A DNA stretch of 64,000 nt from Obrimoposthia wandeli (lineage: Eukaryota): positions 248,001 through 312,000 of the forward strand of contig CDROCS010001101.1 of assembly GCA_977020255.1 (NCBI GenBank), given 5' to 3'. Below the pieces are notes generated by a model. That model was given only the letters and a program-made list of their open reading frames with translations, had not been told where the DNA came from and did not search any database. The position numbers were made by a program, and so were the translations under genes. This document shows positions 4,617 through 39,993 of the stretch, piece by piece (positions within the stretch are counted from its first letter, which is position 1; every line of letters begins with the position of its first letter).

Positions 4617-5579
4617 TCAATCCCTGAATTTTATTGCGTCTGATAAATGTGCGACCGATGTAGCAAAGTAATCTGAACGGTTCCAACGCATAATACTTTT
4701 ATAGTTATTGTAAGCTAAGTATGTGCGCCCTTTCACACCATCGGGCATGACAAGTGATGCATCAAGGTCGACATTTGGTAACGCCTTTCCTTCAAATGTT
4801 CTGATCCCTAAGTCTTGCCACTCTGCTAATTTTTTGGTTATTTTCAATCCGGATATCTCCGCATTGTAGTTCGCAGGTAATTTAACCTGGCGGCCCCAAG
4901 TATAAGTGTCATCCCAATTAGCTTGCTTTAGATAATTAGCTGCAGATGCTAATGCGTCTTCTCTGCTATTCCAAATATCCTTTTTACCATCTTTATTATA
5001 ATCTACGGCATAAGCATTAAATGAAGATGGCATAAATTGTACCTGCCCCATTGCACCAGCCCAAGAACCTTTCATATCCTCAGTAGTAATGTGACCTTCA
5101 TCAATAATCTTTAATGCCGCGAATAATTCTTTTTTGAAGAATGCTTCACGTCGACCATCATAGGCAAGAGTCGCTAATGCAGATAATGTAGAGAAATTGC
5201 CAGTGTAGTTACCAAAGTTAGTTTCAACACCCCACAATGCGATAATAAAACGAGGTTGAACACCAAAGTCTTTGCCTATGCGCTGCAACAGTTCAATATT
5301 TTCGTCATAGTGCTTACGAGCGACAGCAATTTTCCACTCGGGAACAGCTCTGGGAATGTAAGCATCAAGGGTAATCTTTTTACGTTCTGGCTGCGCTTTA
5401 TCATGCGCAATGGTCTTTTCACGGTATTTAATCGAAGCAAATGCATCATCGAGAGTTTCCGAGCTCAACCCTAGCGTCTCAGATTCCGTTCGTAAGGTAG
5501 ATAAATACTCATCAAATGTCGGTTTAGCTGATACAGCTGATGTACTTAAAGCAAATAATACCAATCCTGCTAATTTCAT
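4617..5579 (-). CDS. Lytic murein transglycosylase (MltB-like SLT_2 family), secreted
   Basis: Signal peptide; ALWGVETNFG with catalytic Glu; GSWAGAMGQVQFMPSS; WNRS. Confidence 0.9.
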   Translation of the reverse strand: MKLAGLVLFALSTSAVSAKPTFDEYLSTLRTESETLGLSSETLDDAFASIKYREKTIAHDKAQPERKKITLDAYIPRAVPEWKIAVARKHYDENIELLQRIGKDFGVQPRFIIALWGVETNFGNYTGNFSTLSALATLAYDGRREAFFKKELFAALKIIDEGHITTEDMKGSWAGAMGQVQFMPSSFNAYAVDYNKDGKKDIWNSREDALASAANYLKQANWDDTYTWGRQVKLPANYNAEISGLKITKKLAEWQDLGIRTFEGKALPNVDLDASLVMPDGVKGRTYLAYNNYKSIMRWNRSDYFATSVAHLSDAIKFRD

Positions 5580-33361: not shown

Positions 33362-33409
33362 ATGAACAACAATCTGAAAGTAAACGTGCATCACCATCAT
33401 CATATTTGA
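33362..33409 (+). CDS. hisL: his operon leader peptide
   Basis: Hand translation MNNNLKVNVHHHHHI*, with five consecutive His codons. Confidence 0.92.
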   Translation: MNNNLKVNVHHHHHI

Positions 33410-33467
33410 TTAGCTTTCAGGCTGTTAACTGGAGGTGTATGCATGCAAACTTCCGGAACTCATTTAG

Positions 33468-33504
33468 AAAAACCCTCGGAAGATTGAACTTTCGGGGGTT
33501 TTTT
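33468..33504 (+). promoter_or_regulatory. his attenuator terminator
   Basis: AAAAACCCTCGGAAG-loop-CTTTCGGGGGTTTTTT between hisL and hisG. Confidence 0.88.
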
Positions 33505-33544
33505 CGTTTATAGACAATTATTTTAACAAGGTTTAAGGATGACT

Positions 33545-34456
33545 ATGTTAGACACAAAAAATGACCAACCAAGACTAAGAATCGCAATTCAAAAATCAGG
33601 CCGTCTTAGCACTGAATCTCAAAACCTACTTAAAGCCATGGGCCTTAAAATTAGCATGCGCGAACAACGTTTGATCGCTCACTGTGAAAATATGCCTGTT
33701 GATCTACTTCGCGTACGTGACGACGACATTCCAGGTTTAATCATGGATGGCGTTGCCGACCTTGGTTTCATTGGCGAAAACGAACTAGAAGAAAAAGAAC
33801 TAGAGCGTCAACGTCTTGGTGAACCCGCTGAATACAAACTGCTTAAACGCATGACATTTGGTGGCTGTCGCTTATCAATTGCAGCAACAGAAGAGTTTGA
33901 CTATCAAGGCCCTCACTCTTTAGAAGGCCTTCGCATTGCAACATCTTACCCTGAGCTGCTAAAACGCTACCTTGATGAACAAGGCGTTAACTTTAAATCA
34001 GTCATGCTTAATGGTTCTGTTGAAGTTGCTCCTCGTGCAGGCATTGCCGACGCAATTTGTGATCTGGTATCGACAGGCGCGACGCTTGAAGCTAATGGTC
34101 TTAAAGAAGTACAAGACATCTTCCATTCTAAAGCGGTATTAATTCAAGCTAAAGCAGACTTATCGGAAGATAAACAAGCATTAGTCGATCGCTTAATGAT
34201 TCGTGCTCAAGGTGTAATGCAAGCAAAAGAAAGCAAATACATCATGCTACACGCGCCTAAGTCACAACTTGATGCTGTCATAGCCCTACTCCCAGGTGCT
34301 GAAAACCCAACAGTATTGCCACTAGCATCAACTGAAGACACGGTTGCAGTACACCTAGTAAGTACAGAGAAACTATTCTGGGAAACGATGGAAGAACTTA
34401 AACAGCTAGGTGCAAGTTCAATTTTAGTATTACCAATTGAAAAAATGCTAGGTTAG
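33545..34456 (+). CDS. hisG: ATP phosphoribosyltransferase (long form)
   Basis: [10 protein letters not shown]; VRDDDIP; [25 protein letters not shown]; start placed after AAGGA. Confidence 0.97.
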
Positions 34457-36901: not shown

Positions 36902-37975
36902 GTGAGCAAGGAAAAATTCTTATTTATTGATCGTGATGGTACATTAATCGATGAACCGGTTAGCGATAAACAAGTCGACACTTTAGAGAAACTAAAATTT
37001 GAACCTTTAGTGATCCCAGCATTACTTAAGTTACAAGCTGCAGGTTTCAAGCTAGTCATCGTTTCTAATCAAGACGGACTTGGCACAGATAGCTATCCGC
37101 AAAGTGACTTTGATATCCCCCAAAACGCAATGATGGAGCTGTTTGCTTCACAAGGCGTTAACTTTGAAGCTGTGCTACTTTGTCCGCATTTCACTGAAGA
37201 CAACTGCAGTTGCCGTAAGCCACATTTAGGTATGGTTAAAGAATACTTACAATCAGGTCGTATCGATTTTGCTAACTCGTATGTGATTGGCGATCGTATT
37301 ACCGATATTCAACTTGCCGAGAACATGGGCATTGAAGGCATCTTTTATAATCGCACTGATTTAAATTGGCCAATGATTGAAGATAAGCTCTTGGCTAAAG
37401 GTAATCGCGTTGCGAGTGTAACGCGTACAACCAAAGAAACTGACATTAAAGTAGATATCGACCTTGATAGCCAAGGTGGTAGTAGTATTGATACCGGCAT
37501 GGGTTTCTTTGATCACATGTTAGATCAAATCGCGACACACGGCGGCTTTAGATTAAAATTGAGTGTAGCTGGTGACTTACATATTGATGATCACCACACC
37601 GTAGAAGATACAGCACTCGCCTTAGGCAATGCTATTAACCAAGCACTTGGTGATAAACGTGGTATTGGCCGTTTCGGCTTCGTACTACCAATGGATGAAT
37701 GTGAAGCATCTTGTTCACTGGATCTTTCTGGCCGTGCTTATCTGCAATTTAATGCCGAGTTCCCACGCGACCACATTGGTGAATTTGCAACAGAAATGGT
37801 TCCGCATTTCTTCCGCTCTTTAAGTGATGGTATGGCTGCAACAGTACACCTTAAAGCGGAAGGCAAAAACACTCACCACCTTGTAGAAAGCTTATTCAAG
37901 AGCTTTGGCCGTACGCTTCGCCAATGCATTAAAGTTGAAGGTGATATGCTACCAAGTTCAAAAGGAGTGCTTTAA
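36902..37975 (+). CDS. hisB: Bifunctional histidinol-phosphatase/imidazoleglycerol-phosphate dehydratase
   Basis: [11 protein letters not shown] motif; FFDHML; DDHHTVED; HHLVE. Confidence 0.97.
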
Positions 37976-38607
37976 TGGCTGAAAACACAATCAAAGATCA
38001 AACAAAAAGTAATGTGGTCATTATTGATACTGGTTGTGCCAATCTCTCATCAGTAAGATTTGCCATTGAACGCCTTGGTTATGCAGTGACCGTAAGCCGT
38101 GAGGCTGATGTCCTACGCAACGCTGATAAGCTATTCTTACCCGGTGTTGGTACAGCACAAGAGGCAATGAAAAACTTAGCTGACCGAGATTTAATTGAAT
38201 TAGTCAAAAGCCTAAAACAACCAGTATTGGGGATCTGTCTTGGTATGCAATTGCTTGCTGAATTTTCAGCAGAAAGTTCAGCAGAAGGTAATGTGGCAAC
38301 GCTAGGATTAATCAGTGGCAGTATCGACCCTATGCCAGGTGAAGGTGTTCGTTTACCACACATGGGTTGGAATCAGATTGAACCGCAACAAGATCATCCG
38401 TTATTCAAGGATATTCCAAGTGGCAGTTATTTCTATTTTGTGCATAGTTACGCACTCGCAGTTGGCAGTGACACGATTGCCACCTGCACACACGGCGCGC
38501 CATTTACCGCCGCAGTGAATAGAGATAATTTCTACGGTGTGCAATTCCATCCCGAGCGTTCAAGTAAAGCGGGTGCACAATTAATCAAGAATTTCCTGGA
38601 GATGTAG
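37975..38607 (+). CDS. hisH: Imidazole glycerol phosphate synthase subunit HisH
   Basis: LPGVG; GICLGMQ; FVHSY; QFHPE. Confidence 0.97.
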
Positions 38608-38608
38608 T

Positions 38609-39382
38609 ATGTTAGCAAAGCGCATAATACCTTGTTTAGATGTTAAAGATGGAAAGGTCGTCAAAGGGGTTAAATTCCGTAATCATGAATTGATCGGAGA
38701 CATCGTTCCCCTTGCTCAACGTTACGCTGCAGAAGGCGCTGACGAATTAGTATTTTACGATATAACGGCGAGTGCAGATGATCGTGTTGTTGATAAAAGC
38801 TGGGTAAGTCGCGTTGCAGAAGTTATTGATATTCCTTTTTGCGTTGCAGGCGGCATTAAAAGTGAAGAAGACGCAGCGCGTATTTTAGAATTTGGCGCAG
38901 ATAAAGTATCAATTAACTCCCCTGCACTGGCAGATCCAAGCTTGATTAATAGACTTGCAGCTAAGTTCGGCGTGCAATGTATTGTCATCGGTATCGACAG
39001 TTATTTCGATGAAGACACCGAGGAATATAAAGTCTATCAATTCACTGGTGACGAAACTCGAACACAAGTCACCAAGTGGACAACGTTTGAATGGATTAAA
39101 GAAGTTCAAAAACGTGGTGCCGGTGAAATCGTCCTCAATGTAATGAATCAAGATGGTGTTCGTGGTGGTTACGACACGGTACAATTATCTAAAGCCCGTA
39201 AAATTTGTAAAGTACCACTCATCGCCTCAGGTGGCGCTGGTGAAATGGCACACTTTACGACGGTCTTTAAAGAAGCAGACGTTGATGGCGCATTAGCCGC
39301 AAGTGTATTTCATAAACAAGTCATCAATATTGGTGAATTGAAAGAATATCTACGAGATCAAGATGTGGAGATCAGAACATGA
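38609..39382 (+). CDS. hisF: Imidazole glycerol phosphate synthase subunit HisF
   Basis: [12 protein letters not shown]; [13 protein letters not shown]; GADKVSINS; ASGGAG; ALAASVFH. Confidence 0.96.
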
Positions 39383-39993
39383 TAACAAACGAACAAATTA
39401 GCCAACTTGATTGGAAAAAAGTAGACGGTTTAATGCCAGCAATCATTCAAGACTCAGTATCAGGTGAAGTATTGATGCTAGGTTATATGAATGAAGAAGC
39501 TTTAAAAACAACATTAGAAATCGGCAAAGTTACTTTCTTCAGCCGTACTAAACAACGTCTATGGACTAAAGGTGAGTCTTCAGAGAACTATCTATTGGTT
39601 CAAGAGATAACAAAAGACTGTGACAATGATTCATTACTTATCACAGCTAAACCATGTGGCCCAACTTGCCACTTAGGTACAGATAGCTGCTTCGTAACTG
39701 AAAACAAACCTGCGCTTACATTCATTGCACAACTTGATAAAGTGCTTGAAGAACGTAAGACAGCCGATCCAGAAGTAAGCTATACGGCGAGTTTATTTGC
39801 TCGTGGTACTAAGCGTTGCGCACAAAAAGTCGGTGAAGAAGGTGTTGAAGTGGCACTAGCGGCTGTAGCCAAAGATCGTGATGAGTTAGTGAACGAAAGC
39901 TCTGATCTACTTTATCACCTACTCGTGTTGCTACAAAAAGAAGAAGTTCCACTAACCGAAGTTGTACAGTGCCTTGAAAATCGTCACAAATAA
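39379..39993 (+). CDS. hisIE: Bifunctional phosphoribosyl-AMP cyclohydrolase/phosphoribosyl-ATP diphosphatase
   Basis: [16 protein letters not shown]; DCDNDS; TCHLG; QKVGEEGVE; SDLLYH. Confidence 0.97.

Follow-up and report, generated by a model that had tools for sequence, protein, structure and literature searches.

The histidine biosynthesis (his) operon carried by a 64,000-nucleotide stretch of DNA (hereafter the window; G000:C1101:248001-312000) lacks hisA, and its hisF gene follows hisH directly. It is highly probable that in the Moritellaceae the step from phosphoribosylformimino-5-aminoimidazole carboxamide ribotide (ProFAR) to phosphoribulosylformimino-5-aminoimidazole carboxamide ribotide (PRFAR) is supplied by a single, distantly located gene of the HIS6/HISN3 type, a member of the family TIGR02129. 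The window belongs to an assembly (G000; GCA_977020255.1, Obrimoposthia wandeli) of 1.35 Gb in 6912 contigs, which is mixed and holds many different bacteria; two or more Moritella species and Oceanospirillaceae-like bacteria are among them. Protein identity places the window on a Moritella chromosome. Its HisH is 91% identical to the proteins of Moritella dasanensis (G002) and Moritella sp. 24 (G001), 86-87% identical to those of M. yayanosii and M. viscosa, and at most 74% identical to those of Motilimonas and Psychromonas. Genes were called from the list of open reading frames (ORFs) together with an NCBIfam equivalog scan over 33.5-40 kb of the window, and the operon consists of the following features.

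33362-33409, plus strand: hisL leader peptide ORF, 15 codons, MNNNLKVNVHHHHHI, with five consecutive His codons at 33389-33403, read from the sequence
33388-33507, plus strand: His operon leader/attenuator RNA, Rfam RF00514 His_leader, 58.3 bits (gathering score 49), E 1.3e-8, full model 1-126
33539-34456, plus strand: hisG, ATP phosphoribosyltransferase (long form), TIGR00070 181 bits, TIGR03455 106 bits
34496-35791, plus strand: hisD, histidinol dehydrogenase, TIGR00069 524 bits
35788-36855, plus strand: hisC, histidinol-phosphate transaminase, TIGR01141 362 bits
36902-37975, plus strand: hisB, bifunctional histidinol-phosphatase/imidazole glycerol phosphate (IGP) dehydratase, NF003937 601.6 bits
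37975-38607, plus strand: hisH, glutamine amidotransferase subunit of IGP synthase, TIGR01855 226.6 bits
38605-38611, plus strand: hisH-hisF junction TAG-T-ATG, from the sequence, read as a scar left by the exact removal of hisA in place
38609-39382, plus strand: hisF, cyclase subunit of IGP synthase, TIGR00735 353.9 bits (cut-off 294.6)
39379-39993, plus strand: hisIE, bifunctional phosphoribosyl-AMP cyclohydrolase/phosphoribosyl-ATP diphosphatase, NF002747 288.5 bits

The operon has the hallmarks of leader attenuation, with an RF00514 match above the gathering score and, ahead of hisG, consecutive His codons. The hisL ORF lies at the 5′ end of the RF00514 match, and the attenuator RNA ends at its 3′ side in a GC-rich hairpin and a T-run. 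The full hisGDCBHAF(IE) set is not present; the order is hisGDCBH-F-IE, without hisA. The ORF behind hisH encodes HisF and not HisA, since the protein scan gave only 91.9 bits with the canonical HisA model TIGR00007 (cut-off 229), and this HisF is 83% identical to a Psychromonas HisF. A sequence-only reading of the window had proposed the order hisL-G-D-C-B-H-F-IE, with a hisH TAG ending at 38607, a single T, the hisF ATG at 38609, and no remnant of hisA. The ORFs, NCBIfam, and Rfam agree on this order, and the junction was confirmed in the sequence. The same reading had described the other his genes and the attenuator as intact, which the equivalog scores and the 58.3 bits of RF00514 bear out, and had seen no HisA-like ORF in the window. 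In a six-frame search of the whole of contig C1101 with TIGR00007, the only match was indeed HisF itself (91.7 bits), and no HisA was found.

The junction reads ...CTGGAGATGTAG T ATGTTAGCA..., that is, CTG GAG ATG TAG T ATG TTA GCA. The hisH TAG occupies 38605-38607, the lone T is at 38608, and the hisF ATG starts at 38609; a GGAG Shine-Dalgarno sequence for hisF sits inside the last hisH codons (CTG GAG ATG TAG). For comparison, 80 loci from other genera were fetched with the window HisF, and hisH was found upstream in 76. The gap between hisH and hisF measured 715-930 bp, corresponding to the hisA gene, at 74 of these 76 loci and was larger at the remaining 2. Every Moritella sequence compared has the one-base junction. 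Its carriers are the sister contig C1350 of the same assembly (88% nucleotide identity to the window across the hisH-hisF stretch), an M. yayanosii-type contig, two M. viscosa assemblies, the closed chromosome of Moritella sp. 24, and M. dasanensis. The aligned Moritella junctions all read TTC(C/T)TGGAGATGTA(A/G)TATGTTAGCAAA. Logan contigs from four public runs were also aligned on 37400-39800, and no insertions or deletions relative to the window were reported over that interval. Positions 38605-38611 were bridged by contigs of three studies other than the likely source (X2 record 9, X4 record 15, and X5 record 23), these being a 22.8-kb contig (marine metatranscriptome), a 696-nt contig (food metagenome), and a 553-nt contig (marine metagenome). 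Among the fetched loci, three from Psychromonas (L011, L012, and L013) and one from Vibrio qingdaonensis (L019) had no hisH upstream at E<1e-20, unlike nearly all relatives. The upstream sequence at hand was about 6 kb for L011 and L019 and less than 1 kb for L012 and L013. The genomes of these four loci also lack a TIGR02129 gene, and their his genes seem to be differently arranged.

The hisH ends of relatives indicate where the deletion would have fallen. They read ...TGGAGATGTAAcacATG(hisA), and in Agarivorans, Oceanisphaera, Colwellia, and enterobacteria the hisH end is ...AAAAACTT(C/T)(C/T)TGGAG(A/C)TGTAA or TGA, with the hisA ATG lying 0-3 bases past the hisH stop or overlapping it. The hisH of Moritella ends in this same way, yet the first ATG behind it belongs to hisF, so that the deletion would have spanned the region from the hisA start codon to the hisF start codon. 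It would have removed about 0.72-0.75 kb and left no hisA remnant behind. Because hisA was apparently deleted exactly, hisF would have come to lie one base after hisH and to inherit the GGAG Shine-Dalgarno sequence that once served hisA. By means of this GGAG in the last hisH codons, hisF would now be translationally coupled to hisH.

Canonical HisA was searched for with TIGR00007 (cut-off 228.95 bits) and PriA with TIGR01919 (cut-off 306 bits); a control search with TIGR00007 exceeded the cut-off in 12 of 14 reference genomes. No match over the TIGR00007 cut-off was obtained in any of 13 Moritellaceae species genomes, closed chromosomes included. The best match was HisF, at 89-94 bits, in 11 of the 12 complete Moritellaceae genomes, and a HisA/HisF-type barrel of 115 bits in the other (G010). 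Moritella sp. 24 and M. dasanensis each gave two weak matches only, HisF (92-94 bits) and a second barrel (56-64 bits). No protein came near the PriA cut-off, the window HisF scoring 54.9 bits and the HIS6-type proteins 27-31 bits. Since G000 is a mixed assembly, searches within it need binning ahead of any claim of absence. Canonical hisA genes are numerous in G000 in a six-frame search and all belong to other bacteria; 13 exceed the TIGR00007 cut-off, each on different contigs.

Two genes of G000 were considered as a relocated hisA, C3981:45457-46149 and C2027:144798-145487, which score 207 and 199 bits with TIGR00007 and lie on contigs whose GC content (38-40%) resembles that of the window. 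Both were ruled out: their nearest relatives are from Oceanospirillaceae metagenome-assembled genomes and the Osedax symbiont Rs1, and they have no counterpart in public Moritella genomes. These genes (L091:4913-5656, minus strand, for C3981; L092:4751-5530, minus strand, for C2027) encode standalone, divergent bacterial-type HisA-like barrels of 79% mutual identity, each adjoining a PAS-GGDEF gene. Their relatives are named 'HisA/HisF-related TIM barrel protein', and the group to which these belong often uses a HIS6-type isomerase. A further his locus, C1674:1-7000 (L009), belongs to another gammaproteobacterium whose HisF is 77% identical to that of the window. Its hisGDCB genes are intact at the contig end, its hisH is in pieces of 58 and 103 amino acids, and its hisA consists of a 131-amino-acid N-terminal ORF and a fragment with three stops. 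The broken hisH and hisA of C1674 are either pseudogenes of a host-associated bacterium or assembly noise. G000 has local noisy patches, and single-gene defects in it should not be over-read.

The second barrel of Moritella sp. 24 and M. dasanensis is a member of TIGR02129 ('hisA_euk', an equivalog for the HIS6/HISN3-type ProFAR isomerase with a cut-off of 229.3 bits), scoring 362 and 369.5 bits, respectively. TIGR02129 was found over its cut-off in 12 of the 13 Moritellaceae species genomes, with one copy each at a distant locus, and the scores of the public Moritella proteins range from 362 to 370 bits. The sole genome without it is an incomplete one of 2.7 Mb, which is also without any his match. 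The HIS6-type gene and the his operon lie about 366 kb apart in the closed genome of Moritella sp. 24, and the corresponding distance in G003, also closed, is about 410 kb. G000 itself contains six TIGR02129 genes, two of which are of the Moritella type, with about 90% protein identity to that of Moritella sp. 24.

C410:161866-162612, minus strand: HIS6-type isomerase gene, intact, 252 amino acids, TIGR02129 368.6 bits over model 1-255, no stops
C506:34017-34772 (L124:4509-5276), minus strand: second Moritella HIS6-type copy, with two internal stops

The C410 protein shares 95% identity with its Moritella sp. F3 counterpart and 90% with the one from Moritella sp. 24. Its gene has a TTG start codon preceded by an AGAGGAG ribosome-binding site, and the order of its neighbors is as in Moritella sp. 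F3 (a 971-amino-acid HD-GYP-type protein and DUF3391/HD_5, prepilin-type N-methyl, and DUF547 proteins). An Rfam scan upstream of the gene yielded no His leader and no other regulatory RNA; its expression is therefore probably independent of his attenuation. Apart from one scrambled patch of about 110 bp over the HAADVEG motif (L124, approximately 4625-4745), where dense mismatches and indels give one TGA and one TAA, the C506 copy and the M. dasanensis gene are about 99% identical. This patch has the look of a local error in assembly or polishing, though it may be a genuine lesion. The four further TIGR02129 genes in G000 (C1143:224903-225649, C4896:128139-128885, C5164:32662-33408, and C4362:12673-13419) are intact, encode proteins 67-73% identical to the Moritella protein, and lie on contigs of 39-45% GC. 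By these sequences, other marine gammaproteobacteria in G000 apparently use the same replacement.

The protein itself has the features expected of a ProFAR isomerase. The C410 protein aligned at full length with 9fcf, a 274-residue ProFAR isomerase chain (E 3e-75, query 2-249), and with yeast His6 (2agk; E 1.2e-74, query 2-250), and scored 254-256 bits against these two solved enzymes. Three motifs, CIDLH.G.VKQIVGG (D9), LDLSCR (D131), and HAADVEG (D177), do not vary among the 12 aligned bacterial members, which come from Moritella and from Oceanospirillales-type bacteria. The three aspartates are identical in the alignments to 9fcf and 2agk and are the conserved acidic residues on strands β1, β5, and β6. 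We take aspartates of this type to be the general acid/base of the Amadori rearrangement in HisA/His6. Yeast HIS6 and Arabidopsis HISN3 complement E. coli hisA mutants. The Moritella isomerase scores 88-92 bits with PF00977 His_biosynth, 56-65 bits with TIGR00007, and approximately 27-31 bits with TIGR01919. It resembles HIS6 of Saccharomyces cerevisiae (2agk) and the HISN3-type enzyme (9fcf) in its length of about 250-260 amino acids, its Asp motifs, and its predicted reaction. In contrast to these, its gene is bacterial, stands alone, starts with TTG, and lies beside HD-GYP-type signaling genes. Despite the label 'hisA_euk', TIGR02129 is far from eukaryote specific, as it is found in all complete Moritellaceae genomes. 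With bacterial HisA (TIGR00007) and PriA (TIGR01919) the Moritella isomerase shares the (βα)8 His_biosynth superfamily and the predicted reaction; it differs in being a distant paralogue or xenologue rather than a relocated operon gene. The HIS6-type protein thus presumably carries HisA activity in Moritella, and, as a distant homologue of bacterial HisA, it would fill the ProFAR-to-PRFAR step from outside the operon. This would set Moritella apart from the canonical hisL-GDCBHAF(IE) operon of E. coli and Salmonella, with which it shares the leader/attenuator, the order of the remaining genes, the fused hisB and hisIE, and tight translational coupling. The differences are the lack of hisA, the position of hisF directly behind the hisH stop, and an isomerase that is encoded outside the operon and, probably, outside attenuation control.

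G000 contains just two Moritella his operons (C1101 and C1350) and just two Moritella-type HIS6 genes (C410 and C506). Nucleotide identity to M. dasanensis is 98% for C1350 and 94% for the C506 region, while it is only 80-84% for both C1101 and C410. The nearest public genomes to the his region of the window are G003 (94%), G008 (92%), G002 (86%), and G006 (85%), with the rest at 84%; for the C410 region they are G003 (85%), G008 (84%), G002 (81%), and G006 (80%), with the rest at 77% or less. Elimination and the matching similarity rank (G003 > G008 > G002 > G006 > rest) therefore suggest that C410 is the partner of C1101 and that the two contigs are pieces of the same genome.

In the GTDB order of Moritella, TIGR02129 was present in 11 of 201 sampled genomes; all 11 were Moritellaceae, and the 190 others had none. 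It was present in 19 of 151 sampled genomes of the order of Amphritea. Two Psychromonas genomes and one genome each of Oceanisphaera, Agarivorans, and Vibrio qingdaonensis did not contain it. The replacement is therefore not common to the nearest HisF relatives of Moritella. The nearest proteins outside Moritella (73-77% identity) are from Amphritea, Neptuniibacter, Motiliproteus, Marinobacterium, Oleispira, Oceanospirillum, Sinobacterium, and Cellvibrionaceae. Canonical HisA was not found in Amphritea japonica or in five further TIGR02129 carriers, and none of the 18 carriers tested combined the HIS6-type gene with canonical HisA; this mutual exclusion is the outcome predicted by functional replacement. 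A. japonica, an Oceanospirillales-type bacterium, likewise lacks canonical HisA, with no hisA in its hisB-hisH-hisF cluster and a HIS6-type gene at another place. It differs from Moritella in a hisH-hisF spacer of 63 bp instead of one base and in its hisBHF genes, which were observed in a cluster of their own, as opposed to hisGDCBHFIE. The hisBHAF core is often conserved in order, according to reviews (PMC10138114). The HIS6-type gene may have been acquired by the ancestor of the Moritellaceae from an Oceanospirillales-like gammaproteobacterium, after which the redundant hisA would have been excised. Horizontal acquisition followed by exact in-place deletion of hisA is likely, being the most economical history.

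The absence of hisA from the operon could be explained in other ways. An assembly or collapse error, by which the assembler dropped a hisA that really lies between hisH and hisF, would be in keeping with the noisy patches of G000, such as the scramble of about 110 bp in C506 and the fragmented hisH and hisA in C1674. The one-base junction is, however, found in at least five independent public Moritella assemblies as well as in C1350, no hisA at the level of TIGR00007 is present in the 13 Moritellaceae genomes with their closed chromosomes, and contigs of three other studies cross 38605-38611 without indels; we regard an assembly error at hisH-hisF as excluded. Alternatively, the HisA step might truly have been lost, and the bacterium could be a histidine auxotroph, or heading there, that takes histidine from its surroundings or host. 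This is very improbable, as the seven his genes still present are undamaged, like the attenuator, and have equivalog-level scores, the arrangement has been kept across a family of free-living, culturable marine bacteria, and this lineage has an intact HIS6-type gene with invariant active-site motifs. What speaks for auxotrophy is the operon without hisA, the life of the organism in a host-associated or mixed community, and the internal stops in the Moritella-type HIS6 copy on C506. The sequence-only reading had likewise held recent loss with auxotrophy to be less likely, and the family-wide arrangement and the intact HIS6-type gene uphold this.

Slightly more remote still is the idea that a (βα)8 paralogue with broadened activity, for instance a bifunctional HisF or a TrpF/PriA-like enzyme, carries out the isomerase step while the HIS6-type gene does something else. 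HisA, HisF, TrpF, and PriA have a common fold and chemistry, PriA is bifunctional in Actinomycetota (PMC5404923, PMC13055916), and the HIS6-type gene lies outside the operon without a His leader. Against this, the window HisF is an ordinary equivalog (353.9 bits; 83% identity to Psychromonas HisF), nothing approaches the PriA model, the HIS6-type gene and canonical HisA exclude each other in 18 of 18 carriers, and the HIS6-type protein matches characterized eukaryotic ProFAR isomerases at an E value of about 1e-75. The earlier proposal that hisA had been relocated or displaced by another enzyme is thus upheld for displacement by a HIS6-like isomerase (TIGR02129 in 12 of 13 genomes and the C410 copy) and fails for a relocated operon gene; its PriA-like or broadened TrpF/HisF alternatives are not needed, with HisF at 54.9 bits on TIGR01919 (cut-off 306). 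Two checks proposed with it were run. The hidden Markov model search (TIGR00007, TIGR02129, and PriA) found no canonical HisA in Moritella and did find the TIGR02129 gene, and the inspection of sister genomes and independent contigs gave the same one-base junction without indels.

Several points weigh against the displacement of hisA by the HIS6-type gene as set out here. C410 is paired with C1101 by elimination and similarity ranking and not by physical linkage. The patch in C506, if real, shows that loss of the gene is possible in one strain. The direction of transfer is deduced from the distribution only, and no biochemical or genetic test of the Moritella HIS6-type protein was found in the literature searched. 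A wider scenario can be proposed more tentatively and, taken as one whole, we consider it possible rather than probable. The HIS6 isomerase would be a long-established enzyme of marine Gammaproteobacteria that has displaced hisA more than once in strict mutual exclusion and that moved horizontally into the ancestor of the Moritellaceae, making it possible for hisA to be deleted there without a scar. In that case, eukaryotic HIS6/HISN3 could be derived from a bacterial lineage of this kind and not the reverse, and an isomerase outside the attenuated operon may uncouple its step from histidine control.

The Moritella, Amphritea, and Neptuniibacter proteins are already named 'phosphoribosylformimino-5-aminoimidazole carboxamide ribotide isomerase' by NCBI and JGI. 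At the level of annotation, completeness of the pathway is already known: TIGR02129 is a curated NCBIfam equivalog, and the Moritella genes are rightly named in RefSeq. Given the curated family and the existing RefSeq names, the biological surprise is modest. No paper describing the displacement of hisA by a HIS6-type gene or the scar in the Moritella operon was found in the literature searched. The finding is real and of an ordinary kind. It is of some use as a clean textbook example of displacement and warns against inferring auxotrophy from the operon only. For annotation and metabolic modeling, a hisA gap in a hisBHAF core calls for a TIGR02129 search ahead of any statement that the organism is auxotrophic. 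For the evolution of operons, it offers a clean, datable case in which an equivalent would have been acquired, the resident gene exactly excised, and its coupling signal taken over by the downstream gene. For the organism, an apparent hole in an essential pathway is closed, and the strain is predicted to make histidine by means of a HisA homologue that is encoded away from the operon.

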